Shown one piece after another: positions 53,176-63,400 of a stretch of DNA of 64,000 nucleotides. Positions within the stretch are counted from its first letter, which is position 1. Each line of letters opens with the position of its first letter. Origin of the DNA: Dimorphilus gyrociliatus (taxonomy: Eukaryota; Animalia; Annelida); assembly GCA_904063045.1 (NCBI GenBank), contig CAJFCJ010000006.1, positions 3,364,408-3,428,407 on the forward strand, given 5' to 3'. The notes under the pieces are model-generated. The model was not told the DNA's origin, ran no database searches, and saw only the letters and a list, made by a program, of their open reading frames with translations. The translations under genes were made by a program, and so were the position numbers.

Positions 53176-54935
53176 CTAATTTTGTTGAGATAGAGTCTCT
53201 TTAATTGCTTCAAGAAAATCCAAAGTGTACAAGTACTGATCCGGTTTAACGCTGTAATAATAGAGAAAGATTATTAGTTTATTTACTTGCTAAACAATGA
53301 AATATTTTCTTTTACTTACTTTTTAATTCCATAAATGCACCCAGCAAGATCCTTCGTCATTTTTCCACTGTCGATTGTATCGACACATGCTTTTTCTAAT
53401 GCCTGACAGAATCTGGCTAATTCGGGATTACTATCCAAATTTGCTCTGTGCTCCAAGCCTCTTGTCCAAGCAAAAATAGAGGCAACAGGATTAGTACTAG
53501 TCGGATTACCTTTTTGGTGTTCTCTATAATGTCTGGTTACAGTTCCATGAGCAGCTTCGCTCTCAATGGTCTTACCATCCGGGCACATGAGAACAGAGGT
53601 CATCAGACCAAGACTTCCATATCCTTGGGCAACGATATCACTTTGGACATCGCCATCGTAGTTTTTGCAAGCCCAAACGAATTCACCTTGAGATTTCAAA
53701 GCTTGAGCTACCATATCATCAATCAATCGATGTTCATACCAGATTCCTGCGGAATTGAAATCGTTTTCGTATTGTTTTTCAAAGATTTCTTGAAATATGT
53801 CTTTGAAACGGCCATCGTAGCGTTTAAGTATAGTGTTTTTAGTTGAAAGGTAGAGGGGCCATTTTTTCTTCAATGCATACTGAAAACAGGAGTTGGCGAA
53901 TCCTCTAATAGATTCGTCAGTGTTGTACATTCCCATACCAACACCACCTCCATCTCTGAAGTTGAATACTTCGTATCTCTCCTCTTTGCCTCCAGATGAC
54001 GGAGTAAAGACAAGTTCAAACTTTCCAGGTTGTGTAATAACTAAGTCTGTTGCCTTATATTGATCTCCAAATGCGTGACGCCCAATTGTAATTGCCGAAG
54101 TCCATCCAGGCACAAGTCGAGGTATAGATTTGCAAATAATGGGCTCTCTGAAAACGGTTCCACCAAGAATATTTCGGATGGTACCATTTGGAGAGAGCCA
54201 CATTTTCTTCAATTTAAACTCTTCCACTCTTTGCTCATCCGGGGTAATTGTAGCGCACTTTATACCAACGTTATACTTTTGTATAGCATGAGCAGCATCA
54301 ATAGTGACCTTGAAAATTCAAAAGTTAACAATAAAAGAACTTTGCTCGTACAAAAATAATTCAAAAAAATATTTTTAAATAGCAGTCCCCGCCCTTTTTC
54401 CCTAATGGATTCTATATTTATATATTCACCTGATCATTAGTTTGATCTCTGTATGGTAGACCTAAATCATAATATTTAACGTCTACGTCAAGGTAAGGGA
54501 AAATTAATTGCTCTTTTATTTTCTCCCATATTATTCTTGTCATTTCATCTCCATCTAAATCGACAACGGGATTTTTGACCTTGATTCGTCTCTCCGTTGA
54601 AACTAGAAAACGACCATATATATAAAAAACATATCAATTAAGCAAATAAAAAGTTATATTTCAAAGATTTACTGAATCGATAGCATTCATTTGCACTTGA
54701 ATTTTACAGTTACATTATTTTTTTATCGTAATAAAATTATCTATGTATGTAAATAAACATTTGGTATGTGGCATACGGGGCCGCTCTCCGGTAAGAAAAG
54801 GGAAAAGAATTTGGAGTATTTCTACTTACATTGACTCTTTTGCAAACTATTGCAGCCGATTGAGGCATAAACATGAGCATTCTTAGGTGCCGATCTAGCT
54901 AAACGAGCTGCAAATTTTCCAATTGAAGACGCCAT
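53176..54935 (-). CDS. IDH2: NADP-dependent isocitrate dehydrogenase, mitochondrial; 4 exons
   Basis: Presequence [60 protein letters not shown], and AEAAHG-type motif [13 protein letters not shown]. Confidence 0.97.
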
Positions 54936-55236
54936 CCGCCTAGTTCGAAATGCTGTAGAAAGCTTCAAGCGCAAATGGTTGAGATATTTGGCTCATGAAA
55001 TATCTGGGTGTCGGCATTTAAAAAGAAATTTTTCCTCTTAACTAGGATTTTAAATTCGAGAAATAGGCGAAAATTTTTTTTATAGCATGTATTTTAACAT
55101 TTATTTCATTATATTTTAATTATTTATGTGAAAAACTTGAAACATTTATTTTCTATAAGTCGTCCACCCCTATTTTTGTTTGGAAAATACCTTTAATAGA
55201 ATGTTCCGTTGCGAAATTTCTTGGTAACAACAAGAA

Positions 55237-55368
55237 CCAATCACCGAATTTGTTTTTGTCATTATACATGCAAAGCAGATTGGTAGGAGAGACGTGATTG
55301 GATAGAAAACTAGGAACTCCTTCGCGCAAATGGTGGCGAATGGACGTCTTTCAACGATTGCCGGAAGT
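55237..55368. promoter_or_regulatory. Candidate bidirectional promoter core between IDH2 and NNT
   Basis: CCAAT at 55237, ATTGG at 55279 and 55297, and CCGGAAGT (ETS/GABP) at 55361. Confidence 0.5.
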
Positions 55369-55472
55369 TTATTGAGTTGTAAGTTTGAAGTTGATCATAT
55401 AATAGCACTGCAGAGGATGCAAATGACTTAGTTTGACAATTAAAAGTATGAGACGCATTCTGAATGTTCTGA

Positions 55473-55544
55473 ACAGAATTCTAACATATGAAAATTATCA
55501 ATGATATTGTCTACGTGAGATCATTTTCACTTAGACCAGTCTGT
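55473..55544 (+). ncRNA. Candidate bantam-family pre-miRNA hairpin in the predicted NNT 5'UTR intron (55379-55666)
   Basis: The 3' arm begins TGAGATCATTTT at 55516. It pairs imperfectly with the 5' arm TCTAA-cata-TGAAAATtATC, and a lower stem forms between ACAGA and TCTGT. Confidence 0.35.
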
Positions 55545-55689
55545 GTCTAAAGATACGTGTTGGTGTATTTGGCGCTGCTTAGTTCAAATTGCATAAATAA
55601 ATTTTATTGTGTTTTTCTCGAAACAGTAATCTTATGATATGAGTTAACTAGATCATTTTTTCGCAGGTTCTCGATAAGAAAAAATTAAA

Positions 55690-58600
55690 ATGTTTCGATT
55701 ACAAGTAAGCTAAAATTAGCTTAACCTTACAAAAATAACAAAAAACAAATATTATTTAGAGTGCAGCCAGACCATACTGCAAGCTAAGAAGAGGATTTCA
55801 TACAACCATAAGACTAAAATGTAAAGTTGAGAAGGGAACTAGTTTTTCAAACTTAACAATCGGGGTTCCAAAAGAAACGTTCCTCAAAGAACGTCGTGTA
55901 GCTCTTGTCCCTGCCACAGTTGCTACATTAACCAAAAAAGGTTTCAATGTTAGCGTTGAAGAGAATGCTGGTGCTGAAGCCAAATTTTCCAACGACGACT
56001 ACGCCTCAGCCGGTGCCAAAATTACTTCTGCAAAAGAGGCATTTCAAACAGACATAACTCTAAAAGTACGAGCCCCGTTAGCGAATGAGGTTTCGTTATT
56101 TCGCGACAATGGAATACTTTATTCATTTCTCTATCCAGCTCAAAATCAAGAGTTAATATCAGAGCTAGCAAAAAAAAACTTAACAGTATTTGGAATGGAT
56201 TGCGTTCCAAGAATTTCCAGGGCCCAAGTTTTCGATGCATTATCATCCATGGCCAATATTGCAGGGTTAATAATAGCCTTCTTCAAAATAGTAAAATTCA
56301 TTACAATTACTTTTTTCAACTTTTAGTTACAAAGCAGTTATTGAAGCAGCTGGTGAATTTGGTCGATTTTTCACCGGTCAAATAACAGCAGCCGGTAAAG
56401 TTCCTCCAGCCAAAGTCTTAGTTATTGGAGGAGGTGTGGCAGGTTTAGCTGCTATTGGAACAGCAAAAAATATGGGCGCAGTAGTAAGAGCTTTTGACAC
56501 TCGTGAAGCTGTTCGGGAACAGGTGCAGTCAATGGGAGCAGAGTTTTTAGAACTCAATTTCAAAGTAAGAAGTAATAATATAAAATTAATCTCTTTAAAT
56601 AAGTTTCCGTCTCATATAGGAATCAGGTGAGGGCACTGGAGGATACGCAAAGGAAATGTCAAAGGAGTTTATCGAAGCTGAAATGGCTTTGTTTGCTAAG
56701 CAGGCGAAAGAAGTTGATATAATTATTACAACCGCTCTTATTCCTGGTAAACCTGCACCGAAGTTAATTAAAAAGGTTTCTTATACAACATTCACCGAGA
56801 GATAAATATTTCAATTACTATCAATGATATTTTTTATTAAAAGGAAATGATTGAATCGATGAAACCTGGTTCTGTTGTCGTTGATTTAGCAGCAGAAGCC
56901 GGTGGCAACATAGAAACAACTAGACCTGGTGAAACATACACTTATAAGGATGTCGTTCATATTGGCTATACAGATATGCCCTCTCGATTACCATCAACTT
57001 CATCAACCCTATACAGTAATAATATCAGCAAATTATTACTTTCAATGACTGAGAACGACAGATATTTTATTGATATAAAAGATGACGTAGTAAGAGGATC
57101 AATCGTTTTAGATAAGGTAGATGTCTCTCGTCATATAATTTATTGTCTTAAGTCATAAAAGTTTTATTATAATTCAGGGTGAATTGACTTGGCCCCCACC
57201 AGCTATAAAGGATCCGTCACCTCCTCAAGCTGTCAAAGTTCACGTTGAAGCTGAAAAAGAGATTGCACCAATTAATTACTTTAAAAATACTATGAATAGT
57301 GCGCTAATGTACACCGGAGGCTTAAGCACGGCTCTTGGTAAACAATTTTTAATAACTGGGAGTTAAATAGTTTGCTATTAATTTCATGGTTGTAAACAGC
57401 ACTTGGATACGTAGCACCTAACGCAGCTTTTAGCTCTATGATGACAACTTTTGGTCTTTCCGGAATTGTGGGTTATCATACGGTTTGGGGAGTTACACCC
57501 GCTCTCCATTCACCTCTTATGAGTGTAACGAACGCGATTTCGGGAATAACCGCAGTGGGTGGTTTGTGGCTAATGGGCGGTGGTAAGAGATCAGTGACAT
57601 AGAACTAGATTTCCTCCAATGTGTTCAATTTTTTTTATCCAGGCCTCGTACCGTCAACGACCGCTCAGGCAATGGCTGCTAGTGCCGCCTTTATATCCTC
57701 AATAAATATAGGAGGTGGTTTCCTTGTGACCCAAAGGATGTTAGACATGTTCAAGAGACCTACAGATCCTCCAGAATACAACTACTTGTATGCCATCCCA
57801 GGAGCAGTATTTTTAGCCGGCTACGGTGGAACAGTCTACCTAACAGATTTGCCTGATGTTCACCAGATGGCTTACCTAGCTGCATCACTATGTTGTGTAG
57901 GAGCCTTGACAGGCTTAAGCTCCCAAAAAACAGCTCGTTTGGGTAATGCTTTAGGTATAATTGGGGTAACATCCGGTGTTGCCGCAACTTTAGGCATTCT
58001 GAAACCATCTCCTGAGTTATTAACTCAAATGGCCTTAACAATGGGAGTAGGAGGGGCAATTGGTGTAATAATTTCAAAGAGAATGGAAGTAACAGATCTG
58101 CCTCAAATGGTTGCTTTGTTTCATTCTTTGGTTGGGGCAGCAGCAGTTATTACATGCATGGCGAATTTTATGGTAGAATTTCCACATTTAGCTGACAATC
58201 CAGCCTTAAACATGTTGAAGACGGTTATGTTTTTGGGAACTTACATTGGAGGAGTAACATTCACTGGTTCTCTAATCGCTTTTGGAAAGCTTCAAGGATT
58301 GCTTAAATCCGATCCTCTACTCCTTCCCGGTAGACACGCCATGAATGCAGCCCTAATGGCTACTAATATTGGTGCCATGGGTTATTTCTTGGCAAACGAC
58401 ACATTCGGAAGTGGTATGGGCATGCTACTAGCAACTGCCGGTCTATCAAGCGTTATGGGTGTTACTCTCACATCAGCAATCGGCGGAGCTGATATGCCAG
58501 TTGTCATCACTGTCCTTAATTCCTATTCTGGATGGGCTTTGTGTGCCGAAGGTTTTATGTTGAACAATAGTTTGATGACAGTCGTTGGAGCTTTAATTGG

Positions 58601-59322
58601 CTCATCCGGTGCAATTCTATCCTATATCATGTGCAAGGCTATGAACCGTTCTCTTCCAAATGTTATTTTAGGTGGTTACGGAACAAGCTCCTATGCCGGT
58701 GGAAAAGCTATGGAAATAACTGGAACTCACTCGGAAATAAACATTGATCAGACTGTTGATCTTATTGATGAAGCTCAAAATATAATGATTGTTCCCGGTT
58801 ATGGTCTTTGTGTAGCTAAGGCTCAATATCCCATTGCTGAAATGGTTGATGCTCTTCGAAAGAGAGGAAAGACTGTTCGTTTTGGTATACATCCTGTCGC
58901 TGGTAGAATGCCAGGACAATTGAACGTGCTGTTGGCAGAGGCTGGTGTGCCTTATGATATAGTTCATGAAATGGAGGAAATTAATGACGACATGCCTGAA
59001 GTTGACTTGACACTTGTAATTGGAGCTAATGACACCGTTAATTCGGCTGCCGAGGAAGATCCCAATTCTATTATTGCTGGTATGCCAGTTATTCGAGTTT
59101 GGTTGAGTAAACAGGTTAGTTAATTGAAATTCTGTAAGGTGGAAATACTGAATTTTAACAAATTAACAACAGGTTGTCGTCATGAAACGTACACTTGGCG
59201 TTGGCTATGCAGCGGTTGATAATCCAATTTTCTTTAAAGAAAATACATCTATGTTACTTGGAGATGCGAAGAAAACTTGCGACGGTTTACTTCAACAGAT
59301 CCGAAGCAAATCTGATTCTTAG
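55690..59322 (+). CDS. NNT: Mitochondrial NAD(P) transhydrogenase (fused dI-dII-dIII), about 9 coding exons
   Basis: IGVPKE....[84 protein letters not shown], and [10 protein letters not shown]. Confidence 0.98.
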
Positions 59323-60454: not shown

Positions 60455-63400
60455 ATGATTCAACCCGAAATAGACATAAGTAGAGCAGTTATTAGACGTC
60501 CTTTGTGTGTTAGCGATGCTCCTCATGAAAAAAATTCGAAAGAACAATTTATTAATCGAATTCATAAGATCAAGGAAAAATCTCAAGAAGTTATAACGGC
60601 GAAGTGGTGGAAGAAAAAAATTCTGAGTACTTTCCCGTTTATTGGTATTTTTGGACAGTACAGTTTAAGGGAAGATTTAGTCGGTGATGTTGCTTCCGGT
60701 TTAACTGTTGGAATTATGAATATACCACAGGGTTTGTATTAAGTTTTAAGTATCATCTCATTTTCTTCTATAAAATCTCTTACAATACAAAAAACGGTTC
60801 CTTATCAGGCTATTCGCAGGCCTAGAAAACCGAAACGGTTTACGAGCACGAAACGCCTGTGCGTCGTTTCCTCTTGCGTGAGGCATCTATTATACGCCTT
60901 CATTTAGTTGGCTGTTTATAATCATTTATATATTTTTTCTGCTTTTTTTTCTCCCATCACAGGAATGGCGTATGCTTTTCTTGCATCACTTGGTCCAGTA
61001 TATGGACTCTATGTTTCATTCTTTCCAATCATTGTTTACTTTTTTTTTGGAACTTCAAAACACATCGCGATAGGAACTGCTTCCATTCCTTCACTTCTTA
61101 TAGGATCTATTGTTGAAAGAGATCTTGCTGAACGTTTTCAACCACCAATTAATACAACAAGTACCTCTTTAGAGGATTCAGAAATGCAGTATAAAATACA
61201 AATTGCTGTTGCTATGACATTGATGGCCGGAATTTTTCAGGTTGAATGACCAAAACTGATAAATTTATCCCGTCACGCGCTTTAATTATTCTTTAGAACC
61301 ATTTTTTGCTTATTCACTTTTGTCAACAGATAATAATGAGTTTCCTTCGCTTGGGCGGTGTAACCGTTCTCCTCTCTCCGGCCTTGGTCAGCGGATTTAC
61401 AACAGGAGCAGCAGTTCACGTTTTAACGAGTCAAGTCAAGTTTCTATTTGACATTCGAATTCCTCGGCATTCCGGTTCCTTGAACATTATCTACGTGAGT
61501 AAGCGCTACCATTCAACCATGTAAAATAACTTTTTTTTTCTTTCCCTTTTGTCCACTTCAGACTTACATTGACATTATAAAGAAAATTCCAGAAACAAAC
61601 ATCTGCGCCATAATTATCTCAATTATTTGCATTGTTATCCTTACCATATTTAAAGAAGTCATTAACCCCAAGTTTAAAGCTAAATTACGAATGCCATTTC
61701 CTATAGAGTTACTACTGGTAAAGAATTGAGAATCGAATATATTCGCTTAATTACATATTCTCTTCTCATAAAGTACTTTGTTATTTCTCCTTTTTTATGT
61801 TTTTTTGCAGGTAATTATTGCTACTCTTGCATCGCACTATGGTGGTCTTCCAAGTAAATACTCTGTGACTACTGTGGGAAAAATTCCAGCTGGTTTCAGT
61901 ACCCCGACCTTACCCAAAGCATCATTTATTCCTCATCTTATAGCAGATGCATTTACATTATCCGTTATCTCCTTTACTATAACTTTATCTCTGGCAAAGA
62001 TATTCGCCCAGCGTCATGATTACAACGTTGATCCGAATCAAGTGAGTAGGAAATTGTTTACTGCGAAGACAACGGAGACGTTGATCGATATTTAGACGCC
62101 TTAAGAATGACGTCGCTGTAGATCGAATACAAAGACCGGCATTCCTAATGAGCTTTTCTCTTACTCTCTGTCACTGTCGCTCCAATGTTTTATTTTAACT
62201 ATGAGAGTAATCAAATTCCCTTATTTTTAGCTACTTTTCTTTCTGTTTTTATTCGTGTATACCTTTAAGCTCCAATTCGTTAACAGGAACTTCTAGCATT
62301 AGGTTGGAGTAATACGATATCTTCCTTCTTTAATTGCTATGCTTGCTGCGCTTCCTTGTCGAGGAGTAGTGTTCAAGAATCAGTGGGTGGAAAGACACAG
62401 GTGAACCATACATAATAGTCATTAATAAGTCAACAAAGATATACTAAAATATTAATACACATCCTTATAGCTTGCTGGTTTGTTCTCGTGTGCATTAATT
62501 CTAATAGTCCTACTAGCCGCTGGTCCACTTTTTCAGCCATTACCAAAAGTATGCAATGATATATTCGAATACTAATCGTTTATTAATTAATAACAAAAAT
62601 TAATTATGTTTATGTCTTTCAAATTTACCTTTTATTTCTTTCTATCAAGTGTGTTCTCGCATCCATCATAGTCGTTGCTATCAAGAGCCTATTCAGTCAA
62701 TTTAAAGAACTAAAGCCTCTGTGGAAGACCTGCAAATACGACTTTGTAATTTGTTTTATTTTTATTAATCCTTGCCATTTCCGTTTTTCAATCTATAGTC
62801 TTTTTTTTTCTATTCTTTCGTGAAATTAATTTTTCTTTTTTTTACTCTTATTTCCACATACTCAACGAATAGTTGGTTTGGATTGTGGCCTTTGTCGGAG
62901 TCGTTATCTTGGACGTGGACATTGGTTTAGGTTTAGGAGTCATGTTCTCCCTACTAACAGTCGCATTTCGGTCTCATTATTCAAAAGTTCGAATTTTGGG
63001 AGTTGTTCCTGGCTCGGAATTGTATACAGATTTTAATGATACAAAAACTGTAGAAGAACTTCCAGGATTAAAGATATTGAAATTAGAGAATCCGTTAAAT
63101 CATATAAGCAGCCAACCATTTAAAAGTAGAGTTTATCATTTATCTGGAATAAACCCGGAAAAAAAGAAGAAAGAAGTATTAAGGAAACCGACAGCGTCAA
63201 CTACGGATGATAAACAGGTAATAAATCAACATTAATTCTATGTTGGTAATTAATCAGGATTTTCGAAGGATTCTATCACAGCGGAACTAGCTGAGAATGG
63301 TTTATCAGAGGCGGATGCACTGCACAGAAATAGCTTAAAAACAATTATTTTCGATTGTTCCGCAATTGCACACATGGATTCTGCCGGTCTTCATTGTCTC

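Follow-up and report, generated by a model that had tools for sequence, protein, structure and literature searches.

Here, we show that IDH2 and NNT, the genes for the mitochondrial NADP-isocitrate dehydrogenase and the proton-translocating NAD(P) transhydrogenase, stand head-to-head in the annelid Dimorphilus gyrociliatus, and that this arrangement was inherited from the last common bilaterian ancestor. The pair lies in a stretch of 64,000 nucleotides (GenBank assembly GCA_904063045.1, contig CAJFCJ010000006.1, positions 3,364,408 to 3,428,407; the window, from whose first letter all positions are counted). IDH2 is read from the minus strand (ATG at 54935) and NNT from the plus strand (ATG at 55690), so that they diverge with facing 5' ends and 754 bp from ATG to ATG. 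The pair is broken in vertebrates and absent in two demosponges, and this old linkage has probably been preserved by selection. An earlier note, made from the letters of the window alone, had named both genes, their strands and their start codons, and Pfam, the PDB scores and the RNA joints all bear it out.

The evidence for common inheritance is gene order, for which the neighbours of IDH2 or NNT were read from gene calls and gaps were taken from ATG to ATG, the returned ranges beginning at the ATG. NNT and IDH2 lie 5'-5' in nine of the nine bilaterian invertebrate genomes with a readable context, and the phyla that carry the pair are Annelida (three species), Brachiopoda, Mollusca, Arthropoda (two species), Hemichordata and Cephalochordata. 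The head-to-head gap measures at most 3315 bp in Capitella teleta (where the IDH model is without its first exons), 2145 bp in Lingula anatina, 1672 bp in Pecten maximus, 4663 bp in Branchiostoma belcheri and 3838 bp in a second Branchiostoma assembly, 5491 bp in Saccoglossus kowalevskii (including 1790 N), 1284 bp in Daphnia magna and 8665 bp in the spider Oedothorax gibbosus, whose two genes bear the consecutive locus tags JTE90_019463 and JTE90_019464. Each time the IDH partner is the mitochondrial isoform, as judged by NCBI names, PDB scores and homologous presequences; only IDH2 structures match the spider protein at E<=1e-200, and for the Daphnia IDH exon IDH2 outscores IDH1 (194.7 vs 186.8 bits). 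NNT and IDH also occur on contigs of identical size in Ptychodera, Glandiceps, Antedon, Anneissia, Amphiura, Liolophura, Nucella and Limulus, which is a hint of linkage only; in Limulus no gene is called within 10 kb upstream of IDH2, though both genes are on equal-sized contigs.

The surroundings of the pair are a different matter, as no outer neighbour is common to any two phyla: OATP and SLC26 genes flank it in this worm, and SAND and Sec6, DCX/IQ, fibrillin-like or VPS51/COG5 genes are found elsewhere. Since the pair is present in nine genomes and the prior for such an adjacency is of the order of 1e-5 per genome, it was inherited from the bilaterian ancestor. Since the outer neighbours differ in every genome, slow rearrangement does not explain its retention, and the persistence of both pair and orientation amid changed surroundings argues for constraint. 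Microsynteny in relatives and outgroups is thus strongly positive for an adjacency that the earlier note had seen in one species, and the adjacency is not an accident of a compact genome. The pair shows what marks the conserved ancient pairs (CAMPs) of animals, namely non-paralogous orthologues that are adjacent in distant lineages in a conserved orientation, within a wider neighbourhood that is not conserved. Outside the bilaterian invertebrates, other genes flank NNT in the demosponges Ephydatia muelleri and Amphimedon queenslandica, with no pair, and in a crow IDH2 has a semaphorin gene on one side and a zinc-finger gene on the other, again with no pair. An origin from a bacterial operon was considered and is ruled out by 80 metagenomic loci that carry close IDH relatives, most of them bacterial, and that have no transhydrogenase in their flanks (up to 10 kb).

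The structures of both genes could be read from the genome together with RNA contigs, which were compared over 6000 nt and came from the organism's own transcriptome (X3, 100% identity) and from a coral metatranscriptome (X1, ~99%). Pfam was run exon by exon, and joined coding sequences were used for reading-frame checks. IDH2 has four coding exons that give 447 aa according to its open reading frames, its sequence and the frame check. Exon 1 (54830..54963, minus strand) carries the ATG and a 5' untranslated region (5'UTR) that extends at least to 54963, where an X1 contig ends. Coding exon 2 (54430..54602) is bounded by joints at 54306/54428 (cut +2) and 54602/54830, seen in X1 and X3; the large coding exon (53320..54308) has 329 codons, the Iso_dh domain and joints in RNA contigs; and the last coding exon (53176..53251, stop at 53176) follows a joint at 53251/53320 that is present in X3 and X2 RNA contigs. 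The large exon matches Pfam PF00180 (Iso_dh) at 2.5e-60, and in a PDB search it scores 569 bits against mitochondrial IDH2 vs 517 bits against cytosolic IDH1. The first 35 aa, encoded by exon 1, form a basic presequence (K+R=5, D+E=0; over the first 40 aa, K+R=6, D+E=1) that is homologous to the IDH2 presequences of Lingula, Pecten, Daphnia, the spider, Saccoglossus and amphioxus, and the C-terminus (...LSQQN) is without a peroxisomal -SKL or -AKL tail. By fold, PDB scores and presequence, then, the gene is an IDH2 orthologue encoding a mitochondrial NADP-isocitrate dehydrogenase, its targeting being predicted.

NNT begins with a non-coding exon 1 that ends at 55378, followed by a 5'UTR intron of 288 bp (55379..55666, with a GT..AG joint, 55378>55667, in X3); introns in this genome are usually ~55-70 bp long. 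Exon 2 (55667..55704) consists of 23 nt of 5'UTR, the ATG and the codons for MFRLQ, and is delimited by the joints 55378/55667 and 55704/55760. Coding exons 3-6 (55760-56265, 56327-56564, 56620-56775 and 56844-57116) and 7-10 (57178-57337, 57400-57582, 57643-59117 and 59173-59322) have their joints in X1 and X3 contigs; at the last joint, the loose end of a contig at 59117 matches the sequence from 59173 onward. The nine coding exons, from the ATG to the stop at 59322, encode 1051 aa in frame, a fused alpha and beta transhydrogenase in which four Pfam families (AlaDh_PNT_N, AlaDh_PNT_C, PNTB_4TM and PNTB) are found. By its domains the plus-strand gene is thus a proton-translocating NAD(P) transhydrogenase on a single polypeptide (dI, membrane dII and dIII), and it matches the NNT of other animals in sequence. 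Its N-terminus, MFRLQ, MFRIQ or MFRLL, is common to this worm, Capitella, Lingula, amphioxus and Saccoglossus.

All splice joints predicted for IDH2 and NNT are present in RNA contigs of two independent runs (X3 and X1), and both genes are therefore expressed. The transcripts also redefine the interval between them, which lies in a genome that is AT-rich (33-39% GC) and poor in introns. The earlier note had read the full 754 bp as a shared promoter, and here it has to be corrected: 754 bp is the distance from ATG to ATG, and ~340 bp of it is NNT 5'UTR intron and exon sequence. Because the interval includes the IDH2 5'UTR, with IDH2 RNA reaching 54963, as well as the non-coding exon 1 and the 5'UTR intron of NNT, 754 bp is not the length of the promoter. 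With NNT exon 1 ending at 55378, the gap between the transcribed regions is at most ~415 bp; on the contig evidence, the starts are therefore less than 1 kb apart, the spacing by which bidirectional pairs are recognized, with 415 bp as the upper bound. An operon, in which genes on the same strand are co-transcribed, is a different arrangement, since IDH2 and NNT, read from opposite strands, are each spliced into an mRNA of their own. A single X3 contig spans 54830 to 55380 without a break, so that some RNA covers the whole intergenic interval, which suggests dispersed or overlapping starts or upstream transcripts. The IDH2:NNT ratio of contig depths is similar in the two runs (2275/1377=1.65 in X3 and 18.5/10.5=1.76 in X1), at most a weak hint of correlated expression, contig depth being a poor measure of it and the samples being two. 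Unspliced contigs are present in X3 as well, at a depth of 71 vs 773 spliced for the NNT 5'UTR intron and of 10 vs ~2275 for IDH2 intron 1 (54603-54829); these depths hint that the former is retained much more than the latter.

Conservation between the genes was read against a 38-kb Logan contig (L001) of a close relative, reached through a protein that shares 96% identity with the IDH exon. This sister contig has the order SLC26-like, NNT, IDH2, OATP-like, with 755 bp from ATG to ATG. Identity between the two species is 0.78-0.86 in coding exons and 0.51-0.70 in introns, and against this scale the interval resolves into distinct blocks. Next to IDH2, a block at 54936..55012 (minus strand; 0.92 identity) comprises the 5'UTR and a probable core promoter and holds the decamer CGCAAATGGT at 54970-54979. 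An AT-rich spacer follows (55013..55164), with indels and an identity of 0.55, which is the neutral level. The core block between the genes (55165..55378, 214 bp) is conserved to the level of an exon (0.86), and its right part is NNT exon 1. Within the NNT 5'UTR intron a further block of 130 bp (55511..55640, plus strand) is 84% identical, the remainder of this intron being at 53%. Between the two Branchiostoma assemblies the similarity is too high (~95% identity with indels) for footprinting to be informative.

The 214-bp core block contains CCAAT at 55237-55241, a TATA-like TTATACAT at 55262-55269, ATTGG at 55297-55301, CGCAAATGGT at 55325-55334 and an ETS/GABP-like CCGGAAGT at 55361-55368. 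The earlier note had described a promoter signature of CCAAT boxes in both orientations and a GABP site, and its motifs (CCAAT 55237, ATTGG 55279, ATTGG 55297 and CCGGAAGT 55361) are exactly where it had put them. In the sister species the CCAAT at 55237, the TATA-like TTATACAT, the ATTGG at 55297 and CCGGAAGT are kept in invariant stretches, whereas the ATTGG at 55279 is not conserved, and three CCAAT sites are at chance level for the interval (P=0.22, mean 1.66, in 2000 dinucleotide shuffles). CCGGAAGT, by contrast, would seldom arise by chance (P=0.0085 in 2000 dinucleotide shuffles; three copies in 64 kb). The site itself is transcribed, as NNT exon 1 continues for 10 bp beyond it up to the donor (55378/55379), and a comparable GABP/CCAAT arrangement was not found in other phyla. 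The usual spacing of CCAAT, TATA and start would predict an NNT start near 55295. On the other side, a TATA-like TTTAAA at ~55017-55022, in minus-strand reading just outside the IDH2-proximal block, would place the start of IDH2 near 54990.

Two copies of the decamer CGCAAATGGT, both in the same orientation, are found at 54970-54979 and 55325-55334, one in each conserved promoter-proximal block, and the core GCAAATGGT is retained in the sister species. It resembles the YY1 site (AAnATGGCG) and may be considered a putative one. The conserved intronic block at 55511-55640 has two conserved TACGTG motifs (P=0.01 by shuffling), which agree with the hypoxia-response/bHLH-PAS core, and it resembles a regulatory element within the intron more than a microRNA. 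A bantam-like microRNA in this intron was considered and is not supported: Rfam gives nothing at E<=1, the sister species has a different seed, and the hairpin is unconvincing, with fold z-scores of -1.07, -0.74 and -2.04 and only a short stem.

Why, then, have the two genes stayed together? We consider it somewhat probable (about 60%) that IDH2/NNT is an ancient divergent pair kept by selection on a shared bidirectional regulatory region, and co-regulation from a shared bidirectional promoter would be the likeliest reason for the retention. Selection on such a region would hold NNT and IDH2 together. In this worm the region would be the 214-bp block at 55165-55378, placed between two back-to-back core promoters and bearing two CCAAT boxes as well as TATA-like, YY1-like and ETS/GABP-like elements. 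Shared control could then impose a fixed expression ratio on two enzymes whose biochemical coupling runs via the NADP(H) pool and via the isocitrate/2-oxoglutarate-transhydrogenase substrate cycle. Such a cycle of NNT and IDH has been put forward (Sazanov & Jackson 1994, as cited in PMC3363418), transhydrogenase is a possible source of NADPH for reductive carboxylation by IDH2 in a joint isocitrate/2-oxoglutarate cycle (review PMC3363418), and NNT is reported to coordinate reductive carboxylation (Gameiro et al. 2013, as cited in PMC5426036). The orientation and conservation of the pair also fit the profile of co-regulated ancient pairs given by Irimia et al. 2012 (PMC3514665), in which the 5'-5' orientation is enriched and kept, gaps are short, intergenic sequence is conserved and the genes are co-expressed.

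Several observations weigh against a shared region, and most of them suit promoters that are independent and simply stand back-to-back. Each gene appears to have its own conserved proximal block, with a TATA-like element beside the gene, and between the blocks lie 150 bp of unconserved spacer, a layout that fits two independent promoters equally well. ATG-to-ATG distances in the other phyla are 1.3-8.7 kb, and evidence for a classical bidirectional promoter of less than 1 kb is confined to this worm and its sister. When the intergenic sequence of seven further species was searched for CCAAT, ETS, NRF-1, YY1, Sp1, CRE and ERR sites, no common arrangement appeared; CCGGAAGT is restricted to this worm and its sister, with no ETS site found in those species, CCAAT boxes are scattered and unaligned, and cross-phylum blastn of the intergenic regions gave nothing above noise. 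The RNA evidence consists of assembled Logan contigs, from which 5' ends and expression levels are not readable, and most phyla are represented by one species. Vertebrates, moreover, manage with NNT and IDH2 unlinked, so that the linkage is not indispensable, and they keep a similar tissue preference of the two genes all the same. What would be conserved in that case is the linkage and not a promoter: a breakpoint in the short interval would harm one of the genes, as would a breakpoint in interleaved regulatory sequence (for instance the conserved intronic block at 55511-55640), or both genes would depend on one common open-chromatin domain, and co-expression would be incidental or achieved in trans. 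We regard this explanation as unlikely, if by no means far-fetched. It sits poorly with the strict 5'-5' orientation in all nine genomes and three superphyla while all other neighbours changed, and with gaps of 4-9 kb the argument from a small target for breakage is weak. Irimia et al., in addition, associate co-regulation with head-to-head orientation together with conserved intergenic sequence (PMC3514665).

Explanations that invoke no function fare worse. Amphioxus, Capitella, Lingula, Pecten and Saccoglossus have conservative genomes, and macrosynteny is widely retained in these lineages, so that the pair might be an ancestral accident that slow rearrangement has yet to break. The lack of any outer neighbour common to two phyla speaks against such neutral persistence, as does the survival of the pair in the fast-rearranging or compact genomes of Daphnia, the spider and this miniature worm, and we think it improbable; only 795 conserved groups were retained among the 17 genomes of Irimia et al. 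(PMC3514665). An adjacency that arose by chance in a gene-dense genome, or by convergent assembly in separate lineages, could appeal to the CCAAT boxes, which are at chance frequency in this interval, and to the roughly one quarter of neighbouring genes that are divergent in any genome. Yet for two specified genes in ~15,000 the prior is about 3e-5 per genome, where nine of nine were observed, and the randomisations of Irimia et al. give 0.015 conserved pairs per genome (PMC3514665). Chance adjacency is refuted by the recurrence of the same head-to-head pair across bilaterian invertebrate genomes, and we give it almost no weight.

The fate of the pair in vertebrates may be traced through a third gene. 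The order in amphioxus is NNT-IDH2-fibrillin-like, with the fibrillin-like gene just downstream of IDH2 (contig positions L009:34066-41058 and L010:30822-37585 in the two assemblies). In human, chromosome 15 carries FBN1 and IDH2 (IDH2 at 15q26) and chromosome 5 carries FBN2 and NNT (NNT at 5p12), in paralogous regions; 15q25-26 and 5q13-15 share many duplicated gene pairs. The amphioxus order and these human locations suggest that the pair was duplicated in the vertebrate genome duplications and that reciprocal loss then left one gene at each site. In a broader formulation, the pair would be a bilaterian-wide NADPH module more than 500 million years old, in which a single bidirectional control region sets the enzyme ratio, and vertebrates would have dismantled the module by reciprocal loss of duplicates after two whole-genome duplications and not by rearrangement. 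We put this forward tentatively, as a proposal with a real chance of being right and a greater one of being wrong. Human IDH2 and NNT, though unlinked, both belong to a 27-gene mitochondria-associated set with a preference for striated muscle (heart and skeletal) (PMC8788487).

Ancient divergent pairs of this kind are known, and the earlier note had called such a metabolic pair rare in animals; it is better described as a typical member of a small class. Irimia et al. give HSPE1-HSPD1 and HADHA-HADHB as example pairs (PMC3514665). HADHA-HADHB, like other CAMPs, resembles NNT-IDH2 in joining non-paralogous genes 5'-5' across distant metazoan lineages, with short gaps and a conserved intergenic block, and it too is a mitochondrial metabolic pair. 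HSPD1-HSPE1 (Hsp60-Hsp10) likewise consists of coupled nuclear genes for mitochondrial-matrix proteins, arranged 5'-5' and kept across phyla (PMC3514665, PMC2871058). The differences are instructive: Hsp60 and Hsp10 form one physical complex, whereas NNT and IDH2 are separate enzymes coupled only via the NADP(H) pool; the chaperonin pair is kept in vertebrates, fungi and Capsaspora as well, whereas NNT-IDH2 was not found in two sponges and was lost in vertebrates; and the shared promoter of the former has been demonstrated experimentally, whereas that of the latter is proposed. Bacterial pntAB and icd operons involve the same enzyme families, but the animal genes lie on opposite strands and are monocistronic with introns. 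The purine-synthesis pair PPAT-PAICS (GPAT/AIRC) is known from vertebrates, where its bidirectional promoter has been mapped, while NNT-IDH2 is invertebrate-wide with a putative promoter only. Like NNT-IDH2, PPAT-PAICS unites two enzymes of one metabolic system in divergent orientation over a short shared promoter, according to its citation in PMC2871058.

The kind of feature is thus known, and this member of it, with its meaning for NADPH supply, appears to be undescribed. We found no description of an IDH2-NNT linkage in the literature, where it may be listed without comment in supplementary catalogues; the main text of Irimia et al. 2012 (PMC3514665) does not name it, and it is absent from the accessible portion of the supplementary tables of Davila-Lopez 2010. 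Human lacks the pair, so that analyses and co-expression tests anchored on human would have passed over it. Work on model organisms would likewise not have revealed it, since neither human nor mouse nor Drosophila has the pair. Drosophila is not known to possess NNT.

Animals have few deeply conserved pairs of metabolic genes that are not paralogues, and each is a natural experiment on the constraints of gene order. This one joins two suppliers of matrix NADPH for antioxidant defence and reductive carboxylation, and its retention across three bilaterian superphyla argues that the expression ratio of NNT and IDH2 matters. Its ~400 bp offer a compact test bed for bidirectional promoter function in a spiralian. 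Being present in Bilateria, not found in two demosponges and lost in vertebrates, the pair is also a dated synteny marker, and it may provide a concrete case for the reciprocal loss of duplicates as a route by which regulatory linkage is dissolved.

Some further observations concern the genes themselves and their neighbours. The 61-bp NNT intron at 56266-56326 is missing in the sister species (gaps at 60 of 61 positions, with a single open reading frame across both exons), and must therefore have been gained or lost between two close relatives. The structure of the gene differs between species, from a span of 36 kb in the spider through the nine coding exons of this worm to a single uninterrupted coding exon in Saccoglossus (L011:1297-4509) and Amphimedon (L016:10001-13216); the Saccoglossus gene is intronless, yet it has retained its head-to-head position beside IDH2. 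Full-length NNT is also present on many sponge-associated contigs. In the window, NNT is followed by the gene of an SLC26-type sulfate transporter (60455-63235, plus strand), for which the sister contig shows Sulfate_transp, and an OATP-type transporter lies beyond IDH2, neither neighbour being kept in other phyla. Finally, the ~99% identical spliced IDH2 and NNT transcripts in the coral metatranscriptome X1 (53415-59077) belong to this worm or to a very close strain, which indicates that the animal lived in or on the sampled coral or in the coral's aquarium.

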